From Octopus bimaculoides (Eukaryota): a DNA stretch of 64,000 bases. Of this stretch, positions 16,771-63,837 are shown piece by piece; the first letter of the stretch is position 1, and every line of letters begins with the position of its first letter. The DNA lies in assembly GCF_001194135.2 (NCBI RefSeq), contig NC_068986.1:69841352-69905351 (forward strand), written 5' to 3'. Both the position numbers and the translations under genes were made by a program. Below the pieces are notes generated by a model. The model had not been told where the DNA came from and made no database searches. It was given only the letters and a program-made list of their open reading frames with translations.

Positions 16771-16831
16771 ATGTTACTTGTCCTTGTGTTTGGCGCCATA
16801 TTTTTATTGTTAGCTGGTTCTTTGCAATCGT
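16771..16831 (+). CDS. Putative first coding exon (signal peptide) of the Cys-rich secreted protein gene
   Basis: The first ATG after an in-frame TAG (16729) gives MLLVLVFGAIFLLLAGSLQS plus 1 nt, then a strong donor GTGAGT at 16832. Phase 1 matches the acceptor at 30438. Confidence 0.5.
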
Positions 16832-17567
16832 GTGAGTAGGGATAAACAAACAAAAGTCAAAGAAAAGCAATCAATAATGTGCTCGAGTGAGTAGGCAAAC
16901 TTGATAACTATTGATATTACAATTCTATCGCTCTTGTTAGTATCAAGTAATCAAGGGTATGATTAACTTTCGTGACATTGATTAGAAGCAGAACACTGGT
17001 GGTAGGAAAGGCATTTAAATGGAAGACGGATAAATATAAGAATAAGGGGGTTACATTTGGTATCAAACGCACAGGAAACAACGTCAGAAGAAAGAAGGCA
17101 TATAAAAAGGAAAATAGGGTAATTTGTCCAACAATTGAGGACAAAAACTGATAGAAATATTTTTAAAAAATAACATGACTTAATTAACTAAACCCTGGGA
17201 TAGTTAAACTGAAATTGTGACATTGGGAGTTCTAAAACAATACAACAAATAAGCTAGAATTTCATGAAACAATTTTATTATAGTTTATAGAATTTAAATA
17301 TTTTGCAGCAGATGTGGCTACTGTCTTCGCTAATTAGTTCTGCTTTGTTCAATATCAAGTGAATAAAACGGAGCGAATTCATAACCTATGTGTAATACAT
17401 CGAAAAAGTCACGTGTCACCAGTTTTGTACATTCTTTTATTATATAATGATACTCAGATATTTATTTGACAGAAATCAAGTTTATCTTTGTAATCTTATA
17501 GGAATTTGAGAGGCAGATAGATGGTGTATTTCATATTTTGAGGAAAAGATATTTCAGCTCCTTCAAA

Positions 17568-17746
17568 ATATTGGTTTCAAATTTTGACGCAAGGCCAGTG
17601 AGTTTGGGGGAGGGGCTAAATCGATTAAATCGATCCCAGTGCTCAACTGGTATTATCTTATCGACTCCGAAAGGATGAAAGGCAAAGTGGGCCACGGCAG
17701 AATTTGAACTCAGAACATAAAGACGGACGAAATGCCGCTAAGCATT
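17568..17746 (-). mobile_element. SINE family A
   Basis: GCAAGGCCAGTGAGTTTGGGG...CCGAAAGGATGAAAGGCAAAG...GAATTTGAACTCAGAAC...GCCGCTAAGCATTT. Confidence 0.8.
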
Positions 17747-18282
17747 TAACAACATTTACAGACATAATATACTCTATGCTGGGCAATTTTTATAACTTAG
17801 AAAAATTATAATTATTTCACATCAATAATTTCTCATTGAAAATAGTGAATTTTAAACAAAATTGATTAGTTTCAGTATCCTATTCTTATTGTACAACGAG
17901 ATTGACAGGAAGAATGTAGAAATGCTCCTCCATCGACTGACAATTTCACACTTGCTTGAAGAAATAAAAATGTTTTACTTCCGGCCTGAAATTTCAGTTT
18001 TCCAACCTAAGAATTTCAGAAGCTATTCCAGTAATCGCCAAAAGAAATATTACAATTATAATCATTGATGGTTGCAAAAGACACCTATTACTATAATGGT
18101 GTATAGTATAAAGCAATTACTTTTGTTGATATAACTATCATCATCATCATCACCATCATAATCAACATCACCTTCATCGTCGTCTTCGTTGTCGTCATCA
18201 TCGTCATCATTATCAGTAATTAACTTTGTTAAGTGATAAATACATTTATTAAAAAATGAAGCTAGCGAAATAATTTCATCCT

Positions 18283-18299
18283 TACTACTGCTGCTGCTG

Positions 18300-18363
<64 letters not shown>

Positions 18364-18365
18364 AA
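18283..18365. repeat. (CTG)/(CTA)n trinucleotide repeat, preceded by (CAT)-rich sequence at about 18137-18212
   Basis: Read directly. Explains the poly-S/D ORF 18062..18397. Confidence 0.93.
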
Positions 18366-19837
18366 CAACAAACAACAAATACTACTGATAATGGCATAAA
18401 TTCAGCTGGTAACGCTTACCATATTCATGACATTTAACTCAATGCTGATTTTGACATGGCTGTAGGAATAATTATGTTGATAATTTAAGAAATTCTAGTT
18501 CCAGTTTGTACGAGTATAGATTATTGCTTAGCCACACAGACGCGTGAATGCCATCCCTGTATATATTTCTGTTGGTTCTAAGGCAGTTAGACAGCGTGGT
18601 ATTTGCTCAAGCAAGAGACCAGACAAAGAAAATCAGAGTAGATTGACCAGTGTATGAGTTGATCTTGAATCATTCTGAAATGAGAAAGTGAATTATCAGA
18701 AAACTGCATTGTTCTAATGTCGCTCTGTATTGAACTGGGATTCAGACGTGACATTAAGAATAGTTGGGAACTTATTTCAGCCTTACTGCATGTTCACAAT
18801 AATGCAAGTTGGAAACACACTTGAAAGTTTTGTGAGAAAACGACGAAAGTGAAACAATATCTGCATATACTTGGAAGGAATTATGAATTCATAGCACAAT
18901 TTTATTTGGTTGGCATCGAATAAAAAGCAGATAAGCATGCATGCTTAAAGTGGCTTTCTCAGAGCTTTAGTATATATAGTTCTCTTTTCTATATCTTTAC
19001 TCTTATTTTTTCAAAAGCATTTAACCAGTTTTCACCACTAGCACTAATATTATTATAATGACCGAAGATGAAGTGCGTAATAATATTTAGTCTCAGAGAA
19101 CTTGAATGTTAGAGTCGATTAAGAAGCCGTTTGTAATTAGTCCTTGGCGCTGTTTACATTCGTGACGAAGGCTATCTTGATCGAGTCTCACAACTGTAAG
19201 CACCAGCGCTTTAAACTCGTAAACGATTATATATTTGTAGCGTCTGTATCAATTACTCTTGCAGATAAGTTAATTTCGATATAACAATGTGAAATTTAGC
19301 GCTCACTTAATGCTATGTAATCTGGAAATCATCTCTAATCTAATAGATAGGAAGTAGTGGACGTTTAATTTCTTCCAGACTTCGATTTCACATCCTGTAC
19401 TGTTTGGTTATACTTTAATCATCCATGGTTGATAAAATGAGCACTGTCGTATACTGTGTATTAAAAAGTCTATGATATCAATACGCAAATGCAAAAGAAC
19501 TAGAAATTAGCATCCGAGGAAATGAATGTGTAGGTAGGTTTAAATTCGTAGTTATAGACTTCTTTTCACTTCATTTATCTAACCAATGCTGATAAAAACA
19601 TTAATATTACTTAATCATATATCTCCTTACTATCAGAGAGCGTGCGTGTGCTTATCTCATGAATCTGTTTTAGCAAGCAACTGTTACCATTATCACTACA
19701 ATCAACGCCTATTACACCTCTGCTGTGGTTAATCCCAAAAATATTTTTAAAATCTTTGATACAAATATAATTGCTAATATCAGTATATCAGTGAACATAT
19801 AAACCCCAACGATTGGTTTACGTTAACATTTCCGCTA

Positions 19838-19891
<54 letters not shown>

Positions 19892-19934
19892 GTGTGTGTG
19901 TGTGTGTATGAGTGTGCATTCTTTTATTATTTTA

Positions 19935-20125
19935 TTTGTTTCAGTCATTTGACTGGGGCCATGCTGGAGTACCTTCGGCCGAACAAATCGACTCCAGGAC
20001 CTATTCTTTCTAAGCCTAGTACTTTTTTAACAGTAACTTTTGCCGAACCGCTAGGTTACGGTGACGTAAACACAGCAGCATCGGTTGTCAAGCGATGCTA
20101 GGATGACAAAAACAGACGCACAAAA
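19935..20125 (-). mobile_element. SINE family C (TTTCAGTCATTTGACT...GCCATGCTGGAG...GCCGAACCGCTA...GACGTAAACA as read on +)
   Basis: Recurs at 48540 and 59572 (same orientation) and at 53775 and 63440 (opposite). Confidence 0.75.
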
Positions 20126-20367
20126 ACATACATACATACTGGAAAGCTGAAATCTACAAGATTTTTCACTCACTCTTTCTCTGTTTATTTTCTCTTATTC
20201 CTTTCTGTTGAAGAGCACAGGCGCGAAACGTAAAAGATTCTTTCATTTTTCTCGAGCGTCAAACTAATACACTTGGTTGTTGTTCATACACCTGTCTTCA
20301 TCTTTTGTTTCTCTATAAATTTCAACTATATATATATAAAAAGTAAAAAGTACATATATATATATAG

Positions 20368-20517
20368 GAGGGGATTCGTTCAGTTTCCGTCTACCAGATC
20401 CACTCACAAGGGTCTGGTCCATCCGAGGCTATAGTAGAAGACACCCATTCAAGATGCCATGCGGCGGGACATGCTCTGAGCAATGTGGTTGGGAAGCAAG
20501 CTTCTTACCACACGCGC
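20368..20517 (-). mobile_element. SINE family B
   Basis: ATCCACTCACAAGG...GAGGCTATAGTAGAAGACAC...GGTTGGGAAGCAAGCTTCTTACCACAC. Confidence 0.8.
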
Positions 20518-20518
20518 A

Positions 20519-20562
<44 letters not shown>

Positions 20563-20577
20563 GTGGACGGACAGACG

Positions 20578-20611
<34 letters not shown>

Positions 20612-20667
20612 TATATATATAGATATTTACATACATGCATACATGTATATTTGTATGTATGTATGTA

Positions 20668-22229
20668 TATATAGCAAATGAAGGACGGAACATGGAATAT
20701 ACGAGAATTTATTAATCACGACAATTGTTTCGACACATCTAGCATCGATCCCTCATGGGTGGCACATTCAACAACTAAATCAGGAGGACCCAGCGGTGCA
20801 GATGTACTCAGTCGGGTGATAAATAGATACAACTTATTAAAATAATAGTTCCGCAATGTAAATTCTTGTTTTGTAGAAAGAAAACAGCCAGACGGAAAAA
20901 AAAAATTTCTTCATTTATATAGAAGATCAAAAATAAAATCACAGATGGGAAAAAAGAGAAACGAACACGCAATACAGCGAGAAAAGTATTAAAAATAACC
21001 GTTAACAAATATGGGTGTATAAACTCCCTTGGGCAAGCTGCATAGCACGAGTACACTTGCTCATACAAGCATCCGCGAAAATGTGAGCATACGCACACGT
21101 GAGGTTTGGTGCACTCATGATCACAAAGCGAGTTAGCTATCTACTTGGTGTTTGCAAGAATGGGCGGGGTTTAAATGTAAACTTAAGTCATCCATACCGT
21201 GAAGTAAATTAAATCATGTTAACGGTTACTCAAAATTCCTTCCAACTGCATTGTGCGAACGTACATTTATATGGATGTAGGCATCTCGTGAGTCTTTCAC
21301 AAATTCTATTGATGATCTTCTCGTTAGTCCACAGAATAGACAGGGATTCGTCGGAGCAGAGACGGCATCTCCTGGAAATTATATTGTATGATTTCGCGTG
21401 CCTTACTATGGACCAAGTTATACTGTACTTCATCTTATCCTACTTCAGTCACCATACAAAATCGGCCAAAGATGTTGAATGTCTGTTGTTGATTGTCTTA
21501 AAGATGGCGACATGGTTACGATAATGATTCTTAAATGAATCAGCCGTGTACCCAATATAAACATACGGTCCTCCCCTTGTATGCTCGGTACATTTATATA
21601 CAAGAGTTGTACTCATACAAAGATTCATCAAAGGACATTTTGATTTTTCTCTGCATGAGCATTTAACGTACTTATTTGTATACAAGGTAGTTCCGGCCCC
21701 ATTTACCGGCGTTGTTACCGTGTTAGCTGTATCATAACTATTTCTACAGCTACAATGTGGTGGTAACTGGTGTTTATCATTGCAGTTTACATCTGCTTGG
21801 TTAGTATTTAGATACATATGTGTCGCTAGATCCAGTAGGTGGGTTATTGCACCATTGCCGCATTTTGCTATTGTTTATGCGATGCATATGCTGGCCTAAA
21901 TTAGCAGAATCGGCGTAGGATACCTTCACGGAGTGCCGATTAAAATAGCATGATATCGATTAGGAAAACATTTGTCCAAAGCAGCAATCTTAGTTGAAAT
22001 ATGCGAACAGAAAATCGAGATGAACCAAAGGACATCTTGATTCCTATATCTGTTGTTAGGTTTATTTGATCGAGTGTGCTATACAGGATTGGAACAAGCA
22101 GTTGAATTATTATAACGCGTGTGTCTATGAGTTTTTGTTGGTAGTTCATTGACATGAATAATGTCTAAACAATTGTCGTGATTAATAAATTCTCGTATAT
22201 TCCATCTTCCGTCTTTTATTTGCCATATA
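20668..22229 (-). mobile_element. 5'-truncated Penelope-like element (GIY-YIG endonuclease) with 3' pLTR and inverted partial pLTR at the 5' end
   Basis: - strand frames give DVLWF, FNRHSVKVSYADSANL, CSCREKSKCPLMNLCMSTTLVYKC...YIGYTADSFKNHYRNH...STSLADFVW and WSIVRHAKSYNIISRRCRLC. The 68-bp ends (20668-20735 and about 22162-22229) are inverted with 5 mismatches. Confidence 0.85.
20716..20763 (-). ncRNA. Degenerate minimal type I hammerhead-like motif in the pLTR
   Basis: The - strand reads CCAC-CCAUGA...GAAAC-AAUU-GUC-GUGA, with palindromic stem III ACAAUUGU and a GUC site. The CUGANGA box is mutated. Confidence 0.45.
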
Positions 22230-22415
22230 CATAACGATCACTGTGAAAGTGACCGTTCTATATATAGACTATGAGGGGTTCAGTTTACTTGTGATCAAAG
22301 CGAATAGGTACGCTGGATAAGAGCCATAATTGATCGACCATTAGATTCTAAGATCACAGCGAAAGGCTGTGATCAAGGGATCCGTGTTAGGGTTCCGTTA
22401 TAGCATATACATATT

Positions 22416-23069
22416 AGAGGAAAAATCAAAATCAAAGTAGAACGAGTATCTCAAGTCATTTAGAATAACTTAATGAGGTTTCTGGGATAAACTAGGTGGT
22501 TGGTTAGCCGTCCGTGGCCAGGGTATTCCGTCATCAGAGACAAGGTATGCTTATTTTAGACGAGGAAAAATTACAGTTTACAAGGAATAAAATTCACAGT
22601 TTATAAGGAATAAAATAGAAGAATAAAGAGTAAAAGTAGTTAGAAGAATATAGGCAGGAGAATAATGTTCACAACACATCTTTTTCCAGAGGATAAGGAT
22701 GTTGCTCGGTACTTCCATGAAAGTATACTATATTCTTCTAACTACTTTTACTCTTTATTCTTCTATTTTACTCCTTTATTCTTCTATTTTATTCCGTTTA
22801 AACTGTGAATTTTATTCTTTGTAAATTTTGTGTTAAATATTCTAAAATATTCAGTCTAAAATAGTCTAAATAGCCTAAAATATTCTAAAATATTGTCTAA
22901 AATATTCATACCTTGTCTCTGATGACGGAATACCCCGTGCACGGACATGCTAACCAACCACTTGGGTTATCCCAGAAACAGCTGTAAGACTTCAAATTCA
23001 CCTTACCCTAATTAAATTATTCTAAATAACTTGAGATACTCGTTCTACCTTGGTTTTGAATTTTCCTCT
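22416..23069. repeat. 654-bp foldback: arms 22416-22653 and 22728-23069, 74-bp spacer
   Basis: Arms align by eye in reverse complement (AGAGGAAAA...GTAGAACGAGTATCTCAAG; GGTTAG; GTATTCCGTCATCAGAGACAAGGTATG; AGTAAAAGTAGTTAGAAGAATATAG), with indels. Confidence 0.92.
22915..22990 (+). ncRNA. Candidate minimal type I hammerhead ribozyme (Penelope-pLTR type)
   Basis: GUCU(22915-18), CUGAUGA(22919-25), stem II region, GAAA(22975-78), palindromic ACAGCUGU, GUA site (cut after 22986), AGAC(22987-90) pairing with GUCU. The stem II closing pair is a non-canonical C.A. Confidence 0.6.
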
Positions 23070-23089
23070 GATATAATAATAATAATAAT

Positions 23090-23136
<47 letters not shown>

Positions 23137-26042: not shown

Positions 26043-26055
26043 TGTGTGTGCGTGC

Positions 26056-26125
<70 letters not shown>
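26043..26125. repeat. (TG)n microsatellite
   Basis: Read directly. Confidence 0.95.
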
Positions 26126-26126
<1 letters not shown>

Positions 26127-27566
26127 GTGAGTGTATTTGTCTATGTACAGAAATTTAGTGGTGCTGATTATAAATATCAACAATAGGATATGTAATACTG
26201 TGAGCTGAGATATTTTGATAATCCGAGAATACAATAGCAATTAGAAGACAAAACTCCTTCTAAAAGGTGCCTAAAATCTAAAGCTAGTCGACATTTTGTA
26301 ACCTGTGTATAAATCCATTCGTTTTGTAATGAGAATGAATTACACAGAAAGAGACGCTGTCAAAAGAAATAATATTTTCGAATTATGTCGTCTTTAAATA
26401 TAAACATAATGATTATCACATTGAAATGCGACATTCAGACTAACTTCCTTTGTCTTTCTCTCAGACAACTTTAAGCCAAAATATTCTGTCGGAAATGACT
26501 AGACATAAAAGTAGCAAACAGTAAGTGACTTCGTTGTTATGTAATAGTATGAAATATAGGAAAGGAATAATGATTTTAATGTGTCACGTTAAATGAGAAT
26601 GACTGATCGTATATGATGGTGTATACAGAAATAGCCGACGTGGTATTTAAAATGAAACAGTGGAATACCGTCATTTCTTTCTGTATACTTAAACTTGATA
26701 ATGCAGACTGAGTGTTAGCAGTACGGAAAGCAAGCTGCTGAAGTAAGATGCATTCAATGTGATTATAAATGAAAAGAGGTGCGGAAAGAATGTAAGAGAA
26801 GTGTTGAAAATAATGGATTATCTGTATCAATAAGAGTCTCAAAGGAAAAATCGTTTATGGATTGTTGACTCAGCAAAATTAGCAACCGCTCTGATTCATC
26901 AGAAGACAAATAATGACGATATGATAACGATGTTTCAACAAATAAAACAAAACAAAAAATCAATATATATTTAAAAGCTAGAAAGAAAATAAAATTCTTT
27001 TATAAAAAAAATAACCAGAATAGCTGCTGCTAGGAATAGGCATGTGGTTGGAAACTTTATAGTGTTGTAGTTTCTTTATGAGGGTAAAACAACATTTTTC
27101 AGGGTGGGGGGGAACAAAAAAACAGAACGACCCGAATCGATATAGAAATGAGTTAATTAACTTACATTGATAAATTGATAGCGGTCTCCTTTAATTAATA
27201 GCACAACAAGAAGCAACTACATTGATATCAATAGCTTCTTCAAATGTTATATAATTGATTTGAAACTATATAAAAACGTTTGATTCTTTGAACAAGCGTC
27301 ATATGAAAAATCTGTACTGAGTGGCGGATTCTTCTCTCTGGGCGTTATCCACGCACAAAGTATATTGACTCATCATGACAAAAAGTGCTGTTATAAAAAG
27401 ATAATCAGAGAAATACAGAGTGCAAACATTATAAGGAGGCAGTAAAGATGTAAAGGTATGTTGAAGCAATTGCATAAAAAACCATGAAGCTGACAATGCT
27501 ATTCTATTGCTAAATCTTTAAAGCGTACTGCATTGATACATCTTGACTTGGCAAGCGACAATTATA

Positions 27567-28777
27567 CGAGTTGGTATCAAAATGTTCCCGGACTAGTTCT
27601 GTCGCGCGCCAACAGATGGCGGTACACGATAGTGTGTGCAGTGAGAGCTAGCAGTGACTCATGAGGCAGTGTGCCGAGTAGCATCGCTATGTTTATTTCG
27701 CAAGTTGTGAAATTTGTGTTTTTGTGATCACGTGTATGCTGTACTCTGCGGTTTTATCATGGATTTGCGTTAAACCTGGGAAGTTTGAGAAAGCTTACGG
27801 CGACGAAGAAATGGGCCATACGCAATGTTTCGAGTGACATAGGCGCTCCAAAAGCAGAAGAACGTCCTCTGGAAGACCTACCACAAGTGTCACCCCCGGA
27901 AATGTGGAGAAAATTCATCAACTTGTGCATGAGGATCATCGACATTAACGACATTGCTGATGTTGTTGGTCTGTGATATGGGCCCGTGCAGGCAATCCTA
28001 ACGTCTGAATTAAACATGCGGCATGTCTCTGCCAAGTTGTCTCCCGCTTGCGACCACTGAGCTCAAATAACATCGCGTCTGTTAAGATCTGTCTACATCT
28101 CCATCAGTGTGCTGCTGATGACCCATCCTTCATGTCGAGGATCATCATCGGTAACGAGAGTTGGGTCTATGGGTACGACTCTGAGAAGAAGCAGCAGTCG
28201 TCGAAATGGAAGAGCCCTTCACGACCAAGGAAGGCACGACAGAGTCGCAGCTCAATCAAGAGCATGCTCATAATATTTTTTTTTTGCGACATCTGTGGTA
28301 TTGTGGATCGAGAATTCGTCCCCCAAGGCCAGATCGCCAATCGAGAGTTCTACTGCGACATTTTGAAGCGTTTGAGAGAGACCATTTTGTGAAAGAGACC
28401 GGATCTGTGGAGCGCGAAGAATTGGGTACTTTACGATGATAACGCACCGTCGTCGAGCACTCCTCACTCCTAAGTTTCTCTCCTAAACAGCATGATAACG
28501 CTTCTGCACCCACTCTATTCACCAGATTTAGCACCTGCACACTTCCATCTCTTCCCCCAAGATGAAAATGCCACTCAAAGGTCGCCGTTTTAATACTGTT
28601 GCCGAGATCCAGAGCGAATCACAGAATGTCCTCGATTCACTTACGAAAAACGACTTCCACGCCGGATTCCAAATGCGGCAGGTGACTATTTCGAAGAAGA
28701 TGATGTTAAAACTTGTGTAAATAAGTTTTTTCTTTTATCAAACACAACTAGTCCGGGAACGGTTTCATACTACCTCA
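27567..28777 (+). mobile_element. Full-length decayed mariner (Tc1/mariner) transposon, 1211 bp
   Basis: 32-bp imperfect TIRs share the core GTTCCCGGACTAGTT, with TA at 27565-66 and 28778-79. Frameshifted transposase: IIGNESWVYGYDSEKKQQSSKW, SMLIIFFFCDICGIV, DDNAP, YSPDLAPAHFHLFP. Confidence 0.92.
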
Positions 28778-30437
28778 TAGTTGTTGAAAATCTGCAGTTG
28801 ATAAAAACTATGGGAATGTCTTTCATTTTTCTCTACTTACTAGTTTGTTATAATATATAGTAAGCAGTCAATAATATAACTGTTTTAATATATAAAACCA
28901 ATTTTTCTAAGGATAATAAGACTACAGATCTGCCTCCTAGATCTTTAATGATTGAGTAGATGTATGCATAGATATTTAGATAACTGCTTATAAAGGTGCA
29001 TTGAATACAATGATTAGAGCAAACAATAATTATAAAAAAATATTAAAAAACCCCAGTCATAAACATTTTTCTGCAATACAAATGTTATTTAAGTGTTTCG
29101 AAAATTTACTACAACCCTCGCAAAATACTATGAATCTTAAGTCACAGGGAAGAAAGTCATCAGTTAAATGATGTAAACCGAACAACATAAGGAGCAATCT
29201 TGAGTGTTAATGGTGAAAAGGTGACCAAGTTATTCTATTAAATAATGTAGAATATTAATCCAAGTTAGATCTAAAGCAATATAGTCATCGTTCTAGCTTT
29301 CACACGAATGTAAATATCGAAAACATTTCTCGCATACCTTTGTTAGGAAAGTGTTAAACTCCAGGAAAAACATTCTTGAGAATCATAGCAGAGGTTATAC
29401 TGTCTATCTTCTCAGTACACACAATTTTACAGCAGATTAACCTGTAGAATATAAATGAGGCGCATGACAAAGAATGCAATAACAAGAAACGCAAAAAGCT
29501 CCAAATGGATGCTAAAATTAATTAAAGGATTAAAGCTAACGGAGAAAGAAATATAGAAAACTATAGATCATGCACTTCTCTATTCTATAAAGTGTGCATG
29601 GAACTGCGAGTCCGTGTTTTTGTGAGTATGAGTATGAAAATACTTTTCAATAAACATTTTTGTCACATATTTCATCTGATGGCAATTATCTCCTTTCGAT
29701 CAACGTAACAACCAAAGTATTCACCGTAGTTTTAAAACCATCAACATCAAGGCAACAGATACCTTCACTGGAATAGTCTATGAAACACCAGAAATCTTTT
29801 ATTTCAGTCCCGTACTCAATTGCATGTTGGGATTTCTGTTGAAAGGTTTAGTAGCAGATCAATATTTCTATAAGTAACGATCGTTCACCCGTACTTCAGA
29901 TAAGGCCGATCTGAAGCAAAATAATAACTACAACAACAGCAGTATCAACAATAATAATAACAACAACAACAACAGATGCACTACAACAACAGCAGTATCA
30001 ACAATAATAATAACAACAACAACAACAGATGTAACTTAAATTGCAAATAATGCTTTTCATCAAGGTATACTCCTTTGATTTCCTAGTGGCTAACAAATAA
30101 AGGACCTTCGTTTAGGGATAAAACATTCTGAACTTAGATATCCACATTATTTCAATAATCCTTCAAATGCTCAAAACACTTCTGAAGATTTTTTTTTTTT
30201 TTTTGTTCCTAAGAGGCAAACTTTCTGGAGAACTTCTACAGAGCAGGCACTCCATTCCAATCTCTTTCATCCATTTGTCTGTATCATTACTCACAGTCCC
30301 CATTATATCAACTGTCACAGACACAGGTTTTATGGATTTCATCATCATCATCACTACCATCATCATCATCATCATCATCATCATCGTTCTCATTCTTATT
30401 ATTTATATATTTATTTATCTATTTTTTTTTATTTCAG

Positions 30438-30591
30438 TTACGCTAACTGGAGCGTTGCAGTGTCCCAAAGATTTTACCCAGAAAACAACCGAATGTTTAG
30501 CAGATTATACAAGAGAATTGAATAATGTTGAAAATAATGAGTACAAACTATTAACTGGAATTGAAGTTGAAGCTATCAGAGCATTTTGCAG
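30438..30591 (+). CDS. Coding exon 2 (phase 1 to 2) of the Cys-rich secreted protein gene
   Basis: Acceptor TTTTTTTTTATTTCAG, donor AG|GTATAT. 154 nt encoding TLTGALQCPKDFTQKTTECLADYTRELNNVENNEYKLLTGIEVEAIRAFC. Splices in frame to 53563. Confidence 0.8.
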
Positions 30592-31799: not shown

Positions 31800-32065
31800 A
31801 AATATCATTTGCAAACCTATGGAAAACGAACCTCCACCAACTATTCTGCCTATATGTCTGTCCACACTTTTGAATGCAGTGTATGCCAGAAGGTTTGCAA
31901 ATCTAACAGAAGCCTCAAAAGAGATTTTAGGATCCACAATGATCAGAACTTTTGTGCAGTTCTTGATGGTCCAAATCGGATAAGCAATCTATGTGGGTGT
32001 CTTGTCAGAACATTGTCTGGTTTAAAAAGCCATATCAGATGCCTTGATAGTTCTAAGGTGTAGGT
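31800..32065 (+). mobile_element. RTE-type LINE C-terminal zinc-finger remnant
   Basis: FECSVCQKVCKSNRSLKRDFRIH and LCGCLVRTLSGLKSHIR are two degenerate C2H2-like motifs of the kind ending RTE ORFs. No exon-like splice signals were noted. Confidence 0.55.
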
Positions 32066-32110
32066 ACAGGAGGTGGTCAAACTCTGCATAAGGAGTAAAC
32101 AACCAGCACC

Positions 32111-32150
<40 letters not shown>

Positions 32151-32177
32151 NNNNNNNNNNNNNNNNNNNNNNNNNNN

Positions 32178-32234
<57 letters not shown>

Positions 32235-34727: not shown

Positions 34728-34900
34728 GCGTCGAGCAGGCAGAATCGTTAGCACGCCGGAGAAAATGCTTAGCGGGCGCATTTCGTTCGTCTTTACATTC
34801 TAAGTTCAAATTTAACCGAGATCGACTTTGCCTTTCATCCTTTCGGAGTGGATAAAATAAGTACCATTTAATTGCTGGCCTTGTGCCAAAATCTGAAATC
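34728..34900 (+). mobile_element. SINE family A, near full length
   Basis: GGCGTCGAGCAGGCAGAATCGTTAGC...TTCAAATTT...GACTTTGCCTTTCATCCTTTCGG...GGCCTTGTGCCAAAATCTGAAA. Confidence 0.85.
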
Positions 34901-38929: not shown

Positions 38930-38930
38930 C

Positions 38931-38996
<66 letters not shown>
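38930..38996. repeat. (TC)n microsatellite
   Basis: Read directly. Confidence 0.95.
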
Positions 38997-54410: not shown

Positions 54411-56819
54411 AATATCTGGCTAAAAATATAATTACTGGGGTCAATTTGATCTCATGTACTCACCAATGAATGAACCATATAAAAGAATATAGTATGTGTC
54501 CTGTACTGACTGGATTACACGTAAATATGCTTATTATTTTATGACATTTATTATCGTTCAATCTAAACATGGATTAGTTATTTGCGAGATTTGTAAGTTT
54601 GGAGCTTTTATACGATAAATGTCGAAATATATATGAGCAGTTATTCTTATACTTTTCAATTTTTTTAAAGAAGACGGTTAGTAATACTCGTCTCCCACGA
54701 AATCTGTTAATATACAAGTGCTGCCATATAAAACGACCATTCACCAATGTTATAGTGCAAGTCAATCGAAGTTCAAATATTTGGTGAAAATCAAAAAATG
54801 GAATTTGAAACTCACAGTTCATAGCTGAAATTAGGTTTTACTTTCTGCTACTTGTACATCAATTTAGTCATATATGAATATAGGGTTAGGGTTATATAAC
54901 TACTGGGTGGTCTTCCGTATTTTCTTTGTTGTCCTATGGTCAGATGAAATATATGAAACTGGTGAGGTCATTAATCTTATTTCAATGAACAACCGTTAAA
55001 ATTTTTACAAGATAATACGGATTCAATATGTGGTGGACTTTTCTATTCAACATATTCTATCATACTAGTTCAATTTCTCGGATAAAGCATTTGTGTAATG
55101 TCACTATATAACTATATTTATTTTTGTTGTTTTGTTGTTAGTCTCTTGAGTCCAAGAAAGATGATTCCATAATTTCTTCTTTAACAGCCTGCACAGATGA
55201 TTTGTTTATAGTGATCAAATGTTTGTGCAATAATTTTATTCAGCTTCTCCATCAAATCGACGCTACCTGCACAATTGCATAGAGTGCTATACATCATTTG
55301 TCGAAGTGGTTGCACTATATTCATATAGTTATGCAACTATATTCATATAGATGAAATAGAAGACTACGTATATATCTATATTATATTACGCTCGATGCTA
55401 TTTTTACTTTGTATCTTTCCAAATCTTTGTCCAAAGAAATCCTTCCTTTCAACAATCTATTTGCCAATACAAATATCTTTTCCTACTTTAAGCACCAAAC
55501 CCTGGTATAATTACGCAGTTCATATATACTATCTTAAAATTTTTTGTGTGTTGTATATTTCTGCTGCAAGTTTTTGTTAGAAATACATTATTCTTAATAG
55601 AAATATTGAATTGCCATCAAATGCAATATCTTGCATCCTGAAATACCTTCGCTTTTCCTTTTATCCGATAAAAGTATTGCTCAGAATCACATACTTAATG
55701 TTACGTCGAGTTAGGAACCAAGATATAGACGCCCATAAATTAACTATCTAGATATATTTACACGAATAAAGCTGACCAAGCATATTAGTACGATAATTTT
55801 ATGTCCATTTAAAAGGACATATACACGGCCCTTTGAAGTAAGTATTTGTATAAATGTTATCAAAATCATTCATTAAAATACATCAAATTACTGTTCACTA
55901 TCATTCTTTTCACCAAATTCAATGTTATTTCTGTCCACGAGAATATTTTATCCCATACCGTTTCACTGCAAGTTCTTATATCTTTGATAGAATTATTGCA
56001 GAAAGAATGAATATGATTTTGGAATAACTAAATTACTAACTGCACCCCTGTGAGATTTTTCTACATCTATCACTTAAATATCATATTGAAGTGATTTAAA
56101 ATAACTTTCTTACCTTAAAGTTATTTAATCTACGCCAGTAGAGGATATCATATGCAAAAATTGCTTTTTCAATTGCCTTTCCAACTTTATTGTTTCAAAG
56201 TGGGAATTGTTGATTTATCATCCTATCATCTCCCTGACGACTGAAAAATAGATTAAACCAAAAGATATTGAAACGCTGTTGCAGGAGTTGTATAGATTAC
56301 ACATTTAAATGAAAATTGGCATGCCAATCAGTGTGCGCAGTTGTATTGCTAACCTATAATCTTTCTATATAGTAAATAATTAACTTTCAATGTCGTTAGC
56401 CTTTAGACGTGATAAAATGTAGCTACCAAAGCTGATAATGATATTACATAAATATTGCTTTTGTGGAGTGTTATGTAATTGGTGCTGATGTATGATTAGT
56501 GCATATTGACGTAGGATCCCTTACCATTATCAGCACAACAATCATCAGTCAATCTCGACATTGTGTCGATCACCATCTCACTTGTTACCAAAATGTCGTT
56601 ACTACCTTCTAAACACAGCTATGACAATCACCTCTACAACATAACGTAAGATACACAATTCACATTGTAAGGATGATAAACTTGTGGCTGTTACTCGTAT
56701 TTTCTCATAATTGATATATATATAATCTCCAGCATTTAAACACTATCTTTCTTAACATGATTTTTCTCTGAGTTTCATGAGGAATTTGTATTTACTCTGC
56801 GTGCTTAAGCTAAAGCAGG

Positions 56820-57060
56820 GAGTTGTTGTCACTCGTCTTTGCCTGTTTGTGTGTTTGCAAAATTACTGGAAAGTGGCTGAATGGATTTTCACCAAATTTG
56901 GCGGAAATACTCAGAGCATAAGCGGCTCGAAATCATAAAAAAATGGCTTGATTAGCTTCAAAACAGGCGGACGGGTTTATCAAAATGTTTTGCAGATTTT
57001 TTGCGAAAGAATTTATGTCCATGCAGGGTAAGCATCGTTTGGACATGTTCTCAGCACAAG
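56820..57060. mobile_element. Possible non-autonomous Helentron/MITE-like repeat
   Basis: GCCTGTTTGTGTGTTTGCAAAATTACT...ATGGATTTTCACCAAATTTGG resembles, from memory, motifs of HINE/DINE-like elements. No termini were defined. Confidence 0.25.
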
Positions 57061-58289
57061 AATCTATTACCAGCACCTAAAAACATGTATTATGTCTATT
57101 AAATACCATTTATCCCTCACCAGATGGTGTACTTTTTTTGTTGATCTTCGAGAAATAGTACACAATATATATATATATATATATANNNNNNNNNNNNNNN
57201 NNNNNNNNNNNNNNNNNNNNNNNNNNNNNNNNNNNNNNNNNNNNNNNNNNNNNNNNNNNNNNNNNNNNNNNNNNNTATACACGCAGAAGGTTGAAAAGGA
57301 ACACGTGAGTTGATATATATGGAAAAAAACGTCAAGGTAGAAAATGCTAAAATAATTTTATAAAAACATTTCAGTACCGGTTTCAGTCATTTAGTATGGA
57401 AAGCAATTGAATTTTGGAAAAATTAAAAGAAAAGTTTTTTAAAAGAATATTTTCATAGTATTCAAATACAAGGGACATATTCCTTGTTTCTGCCTGTCTC
57501 TGTCTCTTTTGTTTACTCTTGTGGGTTCGAAGTCGTTTTGAATTCTTGATAGGGAAGAAAAAGAAGAAGAAGGAGGAGGAGGAGGAGGAGGAGAAGTTCT
57601 TCTCCTCTGACCAATATATCCATCATGGACATGCGACCATGGAGAGACTCCCTATAACTGTTGATTAAAGATGTTTAAGCCTTTCAAGTAGAAACATTCG
57701 TACTGCATCAACTGAGCTGTGTAACGGACAAAGATACTTGTCAGCAAATCACATCTAGCAGTGTGTAAGCATAACGAGAAGTACAGTGGAGAAATGTGTT
57801 TTAATAACTTCAAACCAAGATAATCTGTGAAACAAGATTTGGAGAAATGTTTAATATAGTATGTTGTGTGAGAAAGACAAATCAGATTTAACGAGTGTAC
57901 TGGGTCGACCTGATAAAGTGAGTATGCAGATAGCTAACTCGGTTAAGGAGAGGCCGCTGTATTAGTTGAGGTGTCAGAGACGAAAAAGAATGTGTTTGTG
58001 AGTTATGTTTGATGCAACTTCATGAATGTACATTTGTAAACTGGTTGAATAGTGTTCATTTAGGTGCAGGCTGAAATATTTGTGTATGTAGTAAGTGTAA
58101 CAAATGCCACTTGAGCGTTATAGAGTGTCAAAGACCGATTACCGCTGATATATCTAGAATTGAAGAGGAAGCCTACTGTTTGTGAAATGCTTCTGGAAAA
58201 AGTATTTATGTTCGGCTACCAATAGCAATCATCAGCGTCTGTAAAGCTTAGCCAACGTAGCGATTTTGATGGTTTTTAATTGTTCTTCA

Positions 58290-58980
58290 TAACTAAGGAG
58301 AGAAAAGCGTACAAAATAGCTTTCTCCCCTCGATGGTTGTTTTTCAAAATATCTGCACATAGCAGTAGTACAATGTGGCAAGACATGTCTTCGTTGAGTG
58401 TGGTGGATAACTGTATGTTGAAAATTAAGTATTTCAGAATGGTATCATCACCGCAGGATTTTCTGTTGTCAGATTTGACAATAACCAAGTCATTAATGCA
58501 CTAAAGGAAGACTGTAGGAGAAAACCAGTACTTTGACGGAATACCAGGCATTACTGAGTGTAGTTTAGTGAGAACGTCTTCAGCACACCCTGAAAGTGTG
58601 CATTCTGATAAGGAACTTCTAACCAATGGGACTGAAACTTCCGATTAAGAGAAGTGTAGAGGCTATAAGCAGATTTATAGGCAATGCTTACACTGAAGTC
58701 AATACAACATTTTTCCGAACTTCTCAATGCTAAAAGACCATCGGGGCGTAACAGAAAAACAGTCTCTCAGTGGATCTGATGAGAGGTTAATAACTGACAG
58801 AATCAGAGAAGTACACTTTCTAATGATAGAACACATTTTGATGTATGAGATAGATCGCTGCAGAAATAGAAAAAGGTTGGAAATTTTTGCTTTAGTAGAA
58901 GCAATCTTTCGGGATCAGAGTTTGTGCAATGGAAGCGATACTTTTGATAGAAGTTTGTTAGCATTTGGTGAAGTGTGAAT
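58290..58980 (-). mobile_element. Highly decayed CR1/L2-type reverse transcriptase remnant
   Basis: - strand GIPSKYWFSPTVFL*CINDL...SCGDDTIL...LNEDM aligns by eye to GVPQGSxLxPxLFLxFINDL...YADD...LNxDL. Confidence 0.5.
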
Positions 58981-59571
58981 ATAGTGACAGGACTAACAGA
59001 ATAGAGAAAGTGAGTTGGAAGATTTATTTGCTCACGCGATCGAGTTGGAAAAAAAGAGGGCAGCAAATGGGAAGGCTTTCGAAATATTGCTACAAACGTA
59101 GCCATCGTATTTCAGGAAAGGTGGGTAGCAGCATTCACCAAGCCACTAGACGACATTTTAACAAATGCAGAGAAGCCAACTACTGTTTGAGTGGTAGGAA
59201 ACGATGCAAAATGCTTTATGTACAAACTTTTCGTTTGTATGTACTCAAAAATCCTCTTGATACTCTCACTCCTTGAATCATTTCCCAATGTACCATCTGT
59301 ACCCGTTATTGTCTCACCTACTCGTATCCCCACCCAATAATAGAATTCTTGATTTATAACCAACAGAAAATTTAGTGCTAAAAGTCTTCTGAGTCGCGAA
59401 AATACCTAGCTCCTGTATATATAGGTTTTTCATTTTCTCTTGATTTATGTTTATTGTGACAATTTATCCTAATCGATACCACGTGTTTTTTTTTGTTTTG
59501 TTTTTTTTTTCATGTCGCATTGCTTTTTCTGGGTTCTGTAGGGACATAACATTATCTTTTATTTTGTTATG

Positions 59572-59735
59572 TATTTCAGTCATTGGACTGCGGCCATACA
59601 GGGGTATCGCCTTGAAGCGTCGAATAAATGCCCCAGTACTTATTTAAAAACGTTTGATACTTCTATTAGGCTGTGTTGGCTAACTGCTAAATTACGGTGA
59701 CGTAAACAAACCAGTACCGGTTAGCAATCAACAAG
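59572..59735 (-). mobile_element. SINE family C
   Basis: TTTCAGTCATTGGACTGCGGCCAT...GCTAAATTACGGTGACGTAAACAAACCAGTACCGGTT. Confidence 0.75.
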
Positions 59736-59764
59736 GGGAAAAGTACATACACATAGATAGACAA

Positions 59765-59850
<86 letters not shown>

Positions 59851-59854
<4 letters not shown>

Positions 59855-60185
59855 CGTAGGTATGCACATACTTGTACGTATATATGCATATACTCATTTA
59901 TTATTTGTTTTTACATGACCGAACGCCAACGTCATCACTGTTGTAAGTAGTTATTTCAACTTTATATTTTCTGACGCGACTCTATCTCTTTCTCTATCAC
60001 TTTTTCCCCCTCTCGTTCTTCCTCTGTTACTACTACGTATCTCTCTTTACCCCTCTCGTTCTTCCTTCTGTTACTACTATATCTCTCTATTTCCCCCCTC
60101 TTACTTCCTTCTGTTACTACTATATTCCTCTCTTCCTGTCGTTGCCCACCTATTCTTCTACTTCCTCCCTTTGTTTCTCCCTCTA

Positions 60186-60222
<37 letters not shown>

Positions 60223-60746
60223 TACCCCCGCATGGTCACATGCTTCCGGTCACTAATCCTTTTCTTCCTTGGCTATCGCCGAGCAAACACGCGAACTTAC
60301 TTCGTCCCCACTTTCAAGTTCGTGCCTCACAGCGTTCATATACACATATTTTTTCCCATCTGGCCGCGTAGCCTTTTCCGTTTGTTTTCCTGTCTTGTTT
60401 TCTTTTCCGTTTGTTTTTCTGTCTTGTTTTTTGTCCGCCACTATATTCCCCCATGGCACAGGTTTAATTTGTGTATACAAATTTAATTTGCGGTCCATGG
60501 AAAGAGCCGTTTTAACGATGCGTCCTACCCAACTCTTCGAAACGCCGGTGTTAAAACGGGGATAGCTGATGAAGGAAAATGTTCTCTATGGGGCTTGTGT
60601 GTTTTCTGTACTCTGGTTAGTATTATTTTTTTGTCTACGTTTTGTTTGCAATGTCCTGTACCCAGATATGCACCTATATATACAGGTAGACGTAGGTATG
60701 CACATACCTGTACGTATATATGCATATACTCATTTATTATTTGTTT
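59851..60746 (+). mobile_element. 896-bp non-coding insertion with 60-bp terminal direct repeats, embedded in (TA)n
   Basis: 59851-59910 equals 60687-60746 (1 mismatch). (TA)n lies immediately upstream (59766-59850) and downstream (60747-60767). Confidence 0.8.
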
Positions 60747-60771
60747 ATATATATATATATATATATATACG

Positions 60772-60910
60772 CCAGGCTTCTTTTAGTGTCCACCTACTAA
60801 ATCCATTCACAAGGTTTGGTCGATCCGGACTTATAGTATAAGCCAGGGTGCCTTGCAGCGGGACTGAACCTGAAACCATGAAGTTGAGAAAAGAACTTCT
60901 TACTACACAA
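60772..60910 (-). mobile_element. SINE family B
   Basis: AAATCCATTCACAAGGTTTGGTCGATCCGG...GGGACTGAACCTGAAACCATG. Confidence 0.75.
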
Positions 60911-61741
60911 ACATACCTTCCAAAATTATACAGCGTCTATTAGTACAACCACAAAATTATTGACATCAACATCAAAGAGTTACATAAAGTGAGATGGAGA
61001 TATAATCATAAAACTAAAACGACACATTTAAAGCCAAAAATTCTTATTTATCCTGTCTTCAGTTTACTAACATTTGACTTTTTATTTGGTTTCCAACTTC
61101 GTTACAAAGAGGCATAAAAAAACTGCTATATAAAAATGACGTTTTATGTATGCTGCTTTACATAGGTAGTGAGGACGGTAGTTTTCTAAACGTTGACATG
61201 TAAAATCATAAAAAAATATCTCATCCGTTACATAAGTACTTCATCTATAGGTTAGTGTTACTTTTTGTGTCATGTATTCTCTTTCTCTTTCTCTGTTTCT
61301 TTGTTTAAGTTCGCGTGTGTCTCTCCCTTTCTTTCTCTTTCCCCTAGGAAACACATACATACACATGCACATACACACACGCACACACGTATGCATGTAT
61401 TTATACTACTCTAGCTGCATTTCAAATCATTATTACATTATACACCTTAAACATTTATAAACGAAAGTTTGTGAATATTACTATTTGGGGCTGGTACAGG
61501 GGCAACACCGAGAGAAATGACTGGTATGTTAATAAGTTTTCATGGAAGCATAAATCCCGGAATAGAACCTCTTTTAGATGATTCTCTCAATAGGAATTCA
61601 ACGCATATTTCTCCAGATGCTAAATTATATGCATATGCTTACGAAATGTCGGCACCAAATTCAAAGTTTATGTCACATAGAGGGACCTTACGGAAATGAG
61701 ATAAAACAGAGTGTATTATGTGTTCTTACACGACATCAAGT

Positions 61742-61866
61742 ACAGGCGTGGCCGTGTGGTAAGAAGCTTGTTTCCCAACCACATGGTTCTGGGTTCAGTC
61801 CAACTGCATGACACCTTCGGCAAGTATCTTCTACTATATAGCCTCGGAAACTGAAGGAAGCCTGTT
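61742..61866 (+). mobile_element. SINE family B
   Basis: AGGCGTGGCCGTGTGGTAAGAAGCTTG...GGGTTCAGTCCCAACTGC...CTACTATATAGCCTCGG. Confidence 0.8.
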
Positions 61867-62092
61867 TATATAAAATATGTATCCATGCTGAGCCGTTAAA
61901 CCCTACATATTTTTTTCTCTCTCGATTTTCCTTTTCGTTTTTTTTCTCCGCTTTTTTTTTACCTCTTAATACTTTCTGTCGAAGAGAGTAGGCTCGTAAC
62001 GTCAAAGATGTTTCCATTCTTCTAAAGCGTTAAACTAATACATCTGTTTTTTTGTCCTTCACCTGTCTTCGAAAGTTACCTATAAATTTGAA

Positions 62093-62130
<38 letters not shown>

Positions 62131-62255
62131 AGATATAAAAAGATATATACGAGTATATATACAGAAGGCCAGTAGGTGGGCTGGTAATGCGCTAGAAGAA
62201 GATCACATGTCATGTGTCTCCTATATATATATATATATNNNNNNNNNNATTTGAA

Positions 62256-62286
<31 letters not shown>

Positions 62287-62296
62287 CATGTCTCTT

Positions 62297-63175
62297 AAGA
62301 TCACAGTTCGTATTCTTGGGATGGTTACAGTGTAGCTCGTAATATCCGTGGGCATCGAGTAGATCATCTTCACGAATTCATTTCTTCAAGCGATATAACA
62401 TTCATAGATGTTTACCAGAGGCATGTTTATCCCTTTTGAGCAGTGCGAAGGTTAACTGAATTATATGGGTATTTCTGTGTGTATTTGGTGGGGAGGATAG
62501 GAAGGTGATAGAAAGAGAGGAAGGAATGGTAGTTATATGGGAAGGAGGTGTGGACTTATTTCGCTATTCAGTCTGCAGATTTCAAGAATGGGTCGTACAT
62601 TCTTTTGTTCGATCTCATTTAAGGTATGACTATCTTCAATGAATTCTGAAGTAAACATGTCGGTCAGTATAGCCACCACAACCATCAGCTGTAGGAGTTC
62701 ATTATCTGAATTGATAAATGGTACTTTCTTAGGGTGACCTTTTAATTGTTTCAGGTACAATGGTATGTATCCTAAATATCGGTTGGTTTGTCAATTTGCT
62801 TTTATTCCTTCCTTGTTTTATAAAGTGTTAAGGGCGGTTGATGTTATTCTGTTTCAAAATGGGGGTTTTTTTTTCAAATTCCAGAAACGATGTTTTGCTT
62901 TTATGTTCGAATGATATGATCACCTCTGAATGTCTATTTATCATGTTTTCCCTGGATGTGATGATTCCCAGAGTTTCTTCATGGCATATGTTGCATACCC
63001 ATGATGTTCCGGCGTAGCGTTTTTTTTTTCTTTATAATAGACCAGTGAGTCATATGCTTTATTCCATTCTGTTTGAGCCTCCAGACGAGGTTCGATAGTG
63101 ATCTAGAGTGTCACCCGATGCTCACAGATACTACGGACTACACTGTAATCAAACCAGGAATTACGGACTGTGAGA
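62297..63175 (-). mobile_element. Second Penelope-like remnant (C-terminal tail of the GIY-YIG ORF) bracketed by about 60-bp inverted repeats
   Basis: 62895-63050 (-) gives HWSIIKKKK, then after a +1 frameshift RYAGTSWVCNICHEETLGIITSRENMINRHSEVIISFEH, matching WxI...CxLCxxE...LNxRxE. 62301-62360 and about 63112-63172 are inverted at roughly 75-80% identity. Confidence 0.6.
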
Positions 63176-63439
63176 CATGTGATTTGTGGAAACGCGTGTA
63201 GTGAGGCATTAAATGTTTAAAAAATCTATCCAAGGATTATTGTTATATTTAATATTTTTATCCTACACTATATTGGTACCGCTCGATGCAACCCCCAAAA
63301 ATTAGTTCACCAGTCAGCATCATTAGACTGTGACCGGCATATGGAATAGGAGCTTTATATGCATTTTCAAAACGTTTCCCGTAAACAAATTTATAATACA
63401 TATAGATAATGTGTGAGTATGTGTCTTTGTATCTGTGTT

Positions 63440-63625
63440 TGTTTGCCACCATCGCTTGATAACCGGTGTTGGTGTGTTTACGTCCCTGTAACTTCGTGGT
63501 TCATCAAAAGACACCGATAAAATAAGTACCAGGTATGAAAAAATAAGTACTGAAGACGAATCATTTGACGAAGTAACAAGGCGGTGCTGCTAGCATGGCT
63601 GCAGCCTAATGACTGAAACGTGTAT
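63440..63625 (+). mobile_element. SINE family C
   Basis: CATCGCTTGATAACCGGTGTTGGTGTGTTTACGTCCC...GGCGGTGCTGCTAGCATGGCTGCAGCCTAATGACTGAAAC. Confidence 0.8.
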
Positions 63626-63707
63626 AAGATTTTTTTTTAAAAACCATTAAAAGTTGTTTTCTTATATATGCCCGTATATTATCAATTTACTGTTTTTCTT
63701 ATTCCAG

Positions 63708-63837
63708 AATATGCTCGCTACCAGACATGTTTTATTCTTCATAGTGACCACACTGAGAACTGCTTTAGCAAAATTACTAAAAAGACAGTTACTATATTTA
63801 CAAAACTTAAATATCCATCTGACGCAGTGTTCTGCAG
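63708..63837 (+). CDS. Coding exon 4 (phase 1 to 2) of the Cys-rich secreted protein gene; the gene continues beyond the window
   Basis: Acceptor TGTTTTTCTTATTCCAG, donor AG|GTAAGA. 130 nt encoding YARYQTCFILHSDHTENCFSKITKKTVTIFTKLKYPSDAVFC. Phase-compatible with exon 3. Confidence 0.88.

Follow-up and report, generated by a model that had tools for sequence, protein, structure and literature searches.

Three internal exons of LOC106868175, an annotated Octopus bimaculoides gene for a predicted DUF19-like, probably GPI-anchored surface glycoprotein

The Pfam family DUF19 (PF01579) is characterized by twelve conserved cysteines. Its many members are secreted proteins of nematodes; in C. elegans it comprises 51 genes, of which 42 code for a signal peptide and 14 are induced upon infection (PMC3534327, Table 2). 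DUF1397 (PF07165) is the family of the insect 27-kDa haemolymph glycoprotein, and 27-kDa glycoprotein-like proteins are present in plasma-membrane preparations of insect gut (PMC12858984). In the literature on both families we found lists and expression changes only, and no biochemical function. In vertebrates, neuritin/CPG15 (NRN1, PF15056) is a small neuronal protein with a GPI anchor. From profile comparisons we infer that DUF19 and DUF1397 are the closest sequence relatives of the octopus protein described here.

The DNA analysed, a stretch of 64,000 nucleotides of O.bimaculoides (the window), in all probability contains three coding exons from the interior of LOC106868175 (residues 34-175), the product of which would be a DUF19-like, probably GPI-anchored surface glycoprotein. 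The exons are numbered 2-4 after a first-pass annotation, made from the sequence alone, which had proposed four exons forming a hidden gene of 47 kb. The translation of exons 2-4 matches residues 34-175 of XP_014768805.1 (P0010; 287 aa), a record entitled "uncharacterized protein LOC106868175 [Octopus bimaculoides]", at 100% identity. The gene had thus been annotated before, and its extent was underestimated: its annotated range in GCA_001194135.2 is 334,082 bp, so that the window lacks its first and last exon(s). Orthologues, none of which could be named from the sequence alone, are found in O.vulgaris (CAI9723731.1, 94% identity) and O.sinensis (XP_029638123.1), and one UniProt model of the gene, A0A0L8HXR4, already bears the name 'DUF19 domain-containing protein'. 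When the peptide of exons 2-4 was used in a word-index search, no homologue was returned; a later profile search gave the identical annotated protein. LOC106868175 is a real, ordinary gene that NCBI and UniProt already list for three species of Octopus, and biologically it stands for a predicted, unstudied surface glycoprotein; we found no paper on it. Of modest interest are its coding sequence of 864 nt, spread over about 334 kb, and the discordant 5' ends of the public models: translation begins at Met91 in the UniProt model, and the O.sinensis model differs at its N-terminus.

Exons 2-4 are supported by RNA contigs from four runs of four studies (X1, X5, X9 and X13), which confirm the proposed + strand, phases and exact GT/AG sites. 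The contigs from X1 and X5 run through exons 2, 3 and 4, two contigs from X9 cover them, and that from X13 covers exon 2. In the X1 contig (1359 nt, + strand) positions 269-425, 426-565 and 566-695 of the record correspond to exons 2, 3 and 4. Exon 2 (30438-30591, + strand; AG acceptor, GT donor, phase 1 in and phase 2 out) codes for residues 34-85 of XP_014768805.1, i. e. the end of the predicted signal sequence (VTLTGA) and the beginning of the mature protein (LQCPKD...) with Cys42, Cys53 and Cys84. Contigs from all four runs align to 30435-30591 with 0 mismatches; the first three nucleotides of this fit, CAG, are also those with which the upstream exon ends. The following intron (30592-53562, + strand, 22,971 nt), across which the X1 contig jumps from 30591 to 53563 between record positions 425 and 426, contains N gaps at 32151-32177 and 47570-47579 as well as mariner-type transposase remnants. 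Exon 3 (53563-53702, + strand) codes for residues 85-132 with Cys93, Cys101 and Cys124 and carries the only N-glycosylation sequon present, N112-L-S (53642-53650). The X1 and X5 contigs stop exactly at 53702 and the X9 contig reaches 53683, and the loose end of X9 5' of exon 3 is the 3' end of exon 2.

The next intron (53703-63707, + strand, 10,005 nt), delimited by the ends of the RNA contigs, is interrupted by two N gaps (57186-57275, 62239-62248), and a SINE-like repeat is located in it around 53840-53910. Exon 4 (63708-63837, + strand, donor at 63838) codes for residues 132-175 with Cys139, Cys150 and Cys174. Contigs from X1, X5 and X9 fit it with 0 mismatches. Their loose ends before 63708 are the 3' end of exon 3, and past 63837 they continue identically with CAATGTGAAACGCG... 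(S-NVKRVHNCI), which matches residues 175-184 of XP_014768805.1. Both junctions, 30591/53563 and 53702/63708, are hence crossed by RNA. The placement of the X1 contig shows that the order, orientation and frame of exons 2-4 are correct across the gaps, and because this contig joins the three exons directly, no exon is concealed in the gaps in the X1 isoform. All four N gaps between exons 2 and 4 are intronic and touch no exon; they affect only the lengths of the two introns, which contain estimated gap sizes. In the sequence, the four proposed exons are flanked by TA/GT, AG/GT, AG/GT and AG/GT, and they do join into a frame of 161 codons with an open 3' end, with the cysteine spacing (10-30-8-7-22-14-10-23) and the single NLS sequon that had been described. 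The runs labelled as organisms B and C yielded a single contig, identical over 47 nt, and are thus uninformative on divergence. An Rfam search of the window gave no match.

The 5' end of the proposed model did not withstand the comparison with RNA. In that model, the gene starts at 16771 with an exon (16771-16831) coding for the signal peptide MLLVLVFGAIFLLLAGSLQS, consists of four exons over 47 kb, is absent from the annotation and gives rise to a freely secreted protein. An ATG, a hydrophobic run and an in-phase GT donor do exist at 16771-16831. However, a crude scan of the 30.4 kb upstream of exon 2 found 56 combinations of ATG, hydrophobic run and phase-1 GT, so a 'signal exon' of this kind is expected by chance. 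RNA depth over 16500-17100 is zero in X1, X5, X9 and the raw-read run X23, and 4/4 independent contigs (X1, X5, X9, X13) enter exon 2 from ...TACGGACTTACTACATTCTTGGAATCTTCACAG (...RTYYILGIFT|V). This upstream sequence agrees with the N-terminus in the annotation and is also conserved in O.vulgaris, and the codon at its junction with exon 2 is V (G|TT), not F. The proposed exon 1, its junction 16831/30438 and the signal peptide were rejected on these grounds. Together with the annotated range of 334 kb, they make the four-exon gene very improbable, and as the main isoform it is already refuted. Even less credit, practically none, can be given to the idea that the exons are transcribed without meaningful coding, as a pseudogene or a chance open reading frame in a long non-coding RNA. 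That the window peptide has no Pfam match above threshold would fit this idea, but the frame is open through all exons, identity to the O.vulgaris protein is as high as quoted above, all 12 cysteines are kept across molluscan classes at 26-30% identity, and AlphaFold2 (AF2) models the domain with confidence. The outcomes named beforehand as refuting the gene did not occur: spliced RNA is present, and the peptide is kept in O.vulgaris, O.sinensis, gastropods and a bivalve.

The end of the true upstream exon and the start of the downstream exon are both absent from the window when up to 3 mismatches are allowed and shorter words are tried as well. The upstream exon could sit in one of two gaps of 502 nt (12374-12875) and 369 nt (15639-16007). 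It seems more likely that it lies beyond the window, because the gene spans 334 kb; it is expected to end with ...TCTTCACAG/GT, >30 kb 5' of 30438. The locus can serve as a calibration case, in which a reader without tools placed three real exons with exact splice sites, although 23 and 10 kb of intron separate them, and guessed a remote family correctly, yet invented a plausible false signal-peptide exon.

In XP_014768805.1, an N-terminal signal-like segment is followed by an all-helical domain, which contains 12 cysteines, then by a Thr-rich stalk and, at the C-terminus, by a hydrophobic tail. The 12 cysteines (residues 42, 53, 84, 93, 101, 124, 139, 150, 174, 183, 192 and 214) are conserved in the alignments A2 and A3; Cys84 is missing in one relative. 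In the AF2 model (overall mean pLDDT 78), residues 42-215 form a single confident domain consisting of helices only, with means of 73-97, mostly >90, for blocks of ten residues across residues 41-220. A Foldseek search of this model against the PDB found no resembling structure (best E about 1, TM <0.3), and thus the fold yields no functional clue. DPP4, the sole match in a sequence search of the PDB, was discarded as a chance match (E = 0.09).

Relatives were searched with the exon-2 translation alone and then with the database protein. Homologues were found in Nucella lapillus (KAL8558838.1), Gigantopelta aegis (XP_041348483.1) and Sinanodonta woodiana (KAL3851854.1). Identity to the octopus protein is 26-30% in gastropods and a bivalve and 53% in a more distant relative (a Logan transcript). 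The top match of exon 2, a tandem-repeat protein of 1545 aa (P0001), aligns only to residues 6-29 of the query, 18 times, and is not a relative.

The topology was judged from hydropathy and from the pattern across the family. A hydrophobic segment directly precedes the first cysteine in 10/10 full-length members, and in eight of them the only hydrophobic segments are this one and one within ~60 residues of the C-terminus. In the octopus protein, the hydrophobic core is preceded by 25 residues, an unusually long N-terminal stretch; T and A at -3/-1 fit a signal cleavage site. A possible course of events is that the N-terminal hydrophobic segment (YYILGIFTVTLTGA|LQC) directs the precursor into the ER, where the 12 cysteines could pair in as many as six disulfides and so lock the helical domain. 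N112 would receive an N-glycan, and O-glycans may be attached to the Thr-rich stretch at residues about 219-233, which would serve as a short stalk. Finally, the C-terminal hydrophobic tail LFYLTFFAVSFYYLMTFL would be swapped for a GPI anchor, which would keep the domain exposed on the outside of the plasma membrane, where it could act in binding or recognition. The product of LOC106868175 is thus probably tethered to the membrane by a C-terminal GPI-type signal and not freely secreted. Of the secreted, helical and Cys-rich protein envisaged in the first-pass annotation, the Cys-rich helical character holds and entry into the secretory pathway is likely, and free secretion is improbable in view of the probable GPI-type tail.

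Alternatively, the same domain of the same gene could be anchored by a C-terminal transmembrane helix, which would make the product a type I protein with a cytoplasmic tail of eight residues. The C-terminal layout, ...TNGYGVTILPPR-LFYLTFFAVSFYYLMTFL-SSGTLKWT, recurs in relatives, and its eight polar end residues also fit a transmembrane anchor: in the octopus protein SSGTLKWT follows a hydrophobic stretch at residues about 262-279, and residues 261-280 are modelled as a helix by AF2. Furthermore, the C-terminal hydrophobic region is longer in P0012 and P0013, and these two and P0005 have 28-45 residues past the hydrophobic stretch. However, 7/10 full-length members end 1-8 residues past this stretch. 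In a typical GPI signal, the terminal hydrophobic stretch comes after small residues and a polar spacer, and here, too, small residues (N/G/S; N-G-Y-G ahead of LFYLTFFAVSFYYLMTFL in octopus) and a polar spacer precede the stretch. We therefore consider the transmembrane helix rather unlikely.

The proposed remote resemblance to DUF19 was borne out by profile comparison at scores below the Pfam gathering score of 23.2 bits: 14.0 bits (E = 0.046) for XP_014768805.1, 21.0 for the O.vulgaris and 22.9 for the O.sinensis protein, and 16-21 bits for relatives. Six of 11 family members match DUF19, and it is the best or only Pfam match of the three octopus proteins; the window peptide by itself gave no DUF19 match in the Pfam search. 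Residues 42-201 of the octopus protein align to positions 1-143 of the 157 profile positions, and the alignments of P0004 and P0011 cover positions 1-157 of 157. The octopus family has the same number of conserved cysteines as DUF19, a comparison of counts apart from the columns of the nematode profile. In both, a single helical domain of ~160-175 residues with 12 conserved cysteines comes after a signal sequence, which in the octopus family is a predicted one. Unlike DUF19, the octopus family is molluscan and has in addition a stalk rich in Thr/Ser and a putative hydrophobic anchor signal at the C-terminus, for which the listed C.elegans proteins of 140-220 aa leave little space (PMC3534327).

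The octopus protein has no match to DUF1397 at E <= 1 in Pfam. The bivalve protein P0011 passes this profile (28.5 vs 25.7 bits, positions 19-206 of 207) as the only family member to do so, and matches both DUF1397 and DUF19; P0015, the closest non-octopus relative, reaches 14 bits. As is predicted for the octopus protein, DUF1397 proteins are secretory-pathway glycoproteins. The placement of a molluscan family between DUF19 and DUF1397, neither of which is known to have a solved structure, is of modest interest.

Neuritin combines a signal peptide, a Cys-rich helical domain and a GPI signal, a layout predicted for the octopus protein as well, and its C-x8-C-x7-C core spacing is in register with that of the octopus protein (hhalign, probability only 8%). 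In contrast to the octopus protein, it has about 6 cysteines and roughly half the domain length. Its sequence, validated as NRN1 at 134 bits, matches the N-terminal half of DUF19 below threshold (E = 0.009). On the basis of this match, the register of the core and the common layout of signal, domain and GPI tail, a lophotrochozoan family of anchored helical proteins with six disulfides might unite DUF19, DUF1397 and neuritin in one ancient superfamily. The octopus protein could then be the molluscan counterpart of a GPI-anchored neuronal growth or plasticity factor, and neuritin could correspond to the N-terminal half-domain; we regard the whole proposal, the superfamily included, as unlikely. 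Every score in support of the superfamily is sub-threshold. The octopus protein has no match to NRN1 in Pfam; among the 11 family members, one (P0014) matches NRN1, at 15 bits (gathering score 27 bits) and E = 0.03.

The four stretches joined by the first-pass annotation are present in the window and give a frame of 161 codons that stays open at the 3' end, with the claimed Cys spacing (10, 30, 8, 7, 22, 14, 10, 23) and lone N-L-S sequon; their splice flanks are TA/GT, AG/GT, AG/GT and AG/GT. Exons 2, 3 and 4 (30438-30591, 53563-53702 and 63708-63837, + strand) are real and their boundaries exact. The predicted junctions 30591/53563 and 53702/63708 are joined exactly in RNA contigs. A 1359-nt contig of the sequencing run X1 was fitted to the + strand at 30435-30591 (record 269-425), 53563-53702 (record 426-565) and 63708-63837 (record 566-695); one X1 fit at exon 3 reached 8 nt further (53555-53702, record 418-565), with mismatches. 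Contig fits break exactly at both junctions and at 63837, and the loose ends beside each exon carry the adjoining exon's sequence. All three exons were spanned by contigs of X1 (k-mer depth 36.7) and X5 (10.2) and covered by two contigs in X9 (8.3 and 7.2), exon 2 was also covered by an X13 contig (5.4), and sampled words of exon 2 were found in 18 runs from five studies. Past 63837 all contigs read CAATGTGAAACGCGTCCATAACTGTATAGA, in frame as S-NVKRVHNCI, a continuation that was sought in the window and is absent from it.

Two observations concern the transcripts themselves. The X1 transcript carries a synonymous T>C polymorphism at 53686 (GAT>GAC, Asp126) that X5 and X9 do not. In X20, a run labelled organism B, an 830-nt RNA contig matches the final 47 nt of exon 2 (30545-30591) without a difference and continues beyond 30591; the sample is either from a very close species or contains O. 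bimaculoides.

The exon 1 proposed at 16771-16831 is false. RNA depth across 16500-17100 was zero in X1, X5, X9 and the raw-read run X23, and all four contigs (X1, X5, X9, X13) reach exon 2 from another sequence, ...TACGGACTTACTACATTCTTGGAATCTTCACAG. In frame the true upstream exon ends in ...RTYYILGIFT, its final G opening a Val codon (G|TT); because this exon ends in CAG, as the intron does, the contig fit begins at 30435 and not at 30438. The upstream sequence was absent from the window, also when sought with mismatches and as 12-mers, and the exon is thus separated from exon 2 by 30.4 kb or more, except if it falls within the N gaps 12374-12875 or 15639-16007. A crude scan of the 30.4 kb 5' of exon 2 gave 56 combinations of ATG, hydrophobic run and phase-1 GT, so that a signal-like first exon is expected there by chance.

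Of the eight N runs in the window, four fall inside the claimed gene (32151-32177, 47570-47579, 57186-57275, 62239-62248). All are intronic and harmless to the gene model. Since the X1 contig joins exons 2-4 on the + strand, scaffold order and orientation are correct, the frame is continuous and the X1 isoform has no gap-hidden exon; the estimates of gap size bear only on the lengths of the introns, 22,971 and 10,005 nt.

Queried with the 140-aa peptide of exons 2-4, a word-index protein search gave no match. Given a 6-row alignment, the same search recovered a protein 100% identical to the peptide, and the null result is therefore weak evidence. Exhaustive phmmer searching with translated exon 2 gave five relatives, and their profile led to this protein, the 287-aa XP_014768805.1 ("uncharacterized protein LOC106868175 [Octopus bimaculoides]"), to which the peptide plus loose-end residues is 100% identical over 100% of its length. 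Residues 34-175 are encoded in the window. In GCA_001194135.2, LOC106868175, with its 287-codon CDS, is annotated over 334,082 bp; the window thus covers a central part of a gene of great length that reaches far past it at both sides, and the proposed 47-kb extent is wrong.

Nor had the gene been missed, as it is annotated in three Octopus species. Three other models share its 90% cluster: O. vulgaris CAI9723731.1 (287 aa, 94% identical), O. sinensis XP_029638123.1 (310 aa) and the 197-aa O. bimaculoides UniRef entry A0A0L8HXR4, which is named "DUF19 domain-containing protein", starts at Met91 and lacks exon 2 and all upstream sequence. The O. sinensis model ceases to agree with the other two exactly upstream of the exon-2 boundary, which independently supports that boundary; its N-terminus up to this point is unrelated, 63 residues long and lacks a hydrophobic signal. 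The 5' ends of A0A0L8HXR4 and XP_029638123.1 look mis-modelled, or the latter may use another promoter. Follow-up is worthwhile on the 334-kb span of an 864-nt CDS, the disagreement of public models at the 5' end and a possible DUF19/DUF1397/neuritin link.

The product is an uncharacterised DUF19/DUF1397-like, 12-Cys helical protein, predicted to be a surface glycoprotein and probably GPI-anchored. Its relatives include the gastropod proteins KAL8558838.1 (Nucella lapillus) and XP_041348483.1 (Gigantopelta aegis), the bivalve KAL3851854.1 (Sinanodonta woodiana) and several transcript-assembly proteins of unnamed species. A Pfam search with the window-only peptide gave nothing useful (CPG4, E = 0.2); full-length XP_014768805.1 matched DUF19 only, at 14 bits (residues 42-201, profile positions 1-143 of 157), and its orthologues scored 21.0 (O. 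vulgaris) and 22.9 bits (O. sinensis). The DUF19 resemblance seen earlier is thus sound as a remote-homology call, but 14 bits against a cut-off of 23.2 does not give formal membership. DUF19 was matched by six of the 11 family members, several across all 157 positions, and DUF1397 by four, the bivalve protein scoring above the cut-off (28.5 vs 25.7 bits). Both families are functionally uncharacterised. Of the 51 DUF19 genes in C. elegans, 42 encode a signal peptide and 14 are infection-induced (PMC3534327); an oyster DUF19 protein is listed in a pull-down (PMC10058639), and insect gut plasma-membrane proteomes include 27-kDa glycoprotein-like proteins (PMC12858984).

The N-terminus of XP_014768805.1 reads MATFSYLCRRLALDTKGLLITTLRTYYILGIFTVTLTGA|LQCPKD..., followed by twelve conserved cysteines (42, 53, 84, 93, 101, 124, 139, 150, 174, 183, 192, 214), a Thr-rich stalk at about 219-233 (VTTTSTPTTTRSTTH) and the tail ...TNGYGVTILPPR-LFYLTFFAVSFYYLMTFL-SSGTLKWT. 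An AlphaFold2 model built with the 11-sequence alignment (mean pLDDT 78, pTM 0.61) has nine helices ahead of the stalk and lacks any strand of at least three residues, with ten-residue block means of 73-97, mostly >90, over residues 41-220. Solved structures gave no match by sequence, nor by Foldseek fold search (best E about 1, TM <0.3). Judged by the usual layout of secretory and GPI signals, the protein would be a disulfide-locked, N- and O-glycosylated surface glycoprotein, most likely held by GPI; the main alternative is a short-tailed single-pass membrane anchor. Of ten full-length members, eight have no hydrophobic segments apart from one that immediately precedes the first Cys and another in the last 60 or so residues, and in seven of ten this second segment stops 1-8 residues short of the C-terminus; in the relatives P0012 and P0013 the hydrophobic region at the C-terminal end is longer.

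Vertebrate neuritin shares the layout proposed for the octopus protein: signal, Cys-rich helical domain and GPI tail. The sequence used for human neuritin scored 134 bits on NRN1 and is thus a true family member; it also matched the first half of DUF19 (E = 0.009). With hhalign the C-x8-C-x7-C core of the family profile and neuritin fell in register, at a probability of only 8%, and the link is suggestive and no more.

The window has 34% G+C and many microsatellites. A (CAT)n microsatellite at 30339-30390, about 50 nt 5' of the exon 2 acceptor, was covered by RNA at very high depth, with many false backward joints in the RNA layout; this signal derives from repeats elsewhere, not from LOC106868175. 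A SINE-like repeat at 53840-53910, 140 nt downstream of exon 3 (GGGGTCGATTT...GGTGCTCCAGCATGGCCGCAGTCAAATGACTGAAACA), had no match in Rfam; its RNA-contig k-mer depth of up to about 9x10^5 and hundreds of short contigs per run point to a repeat family that is transcribed and very abundant. Decayed mariner/Mos1-type transposase remnants lie in or near introns at 48841-49254 (-), 49420-49845 (-) and 28009-28389 (+), with Pfam matches to Transposase_1 (E = 4e-15 and 1e-5) and HTH_48 (E = 0.004).
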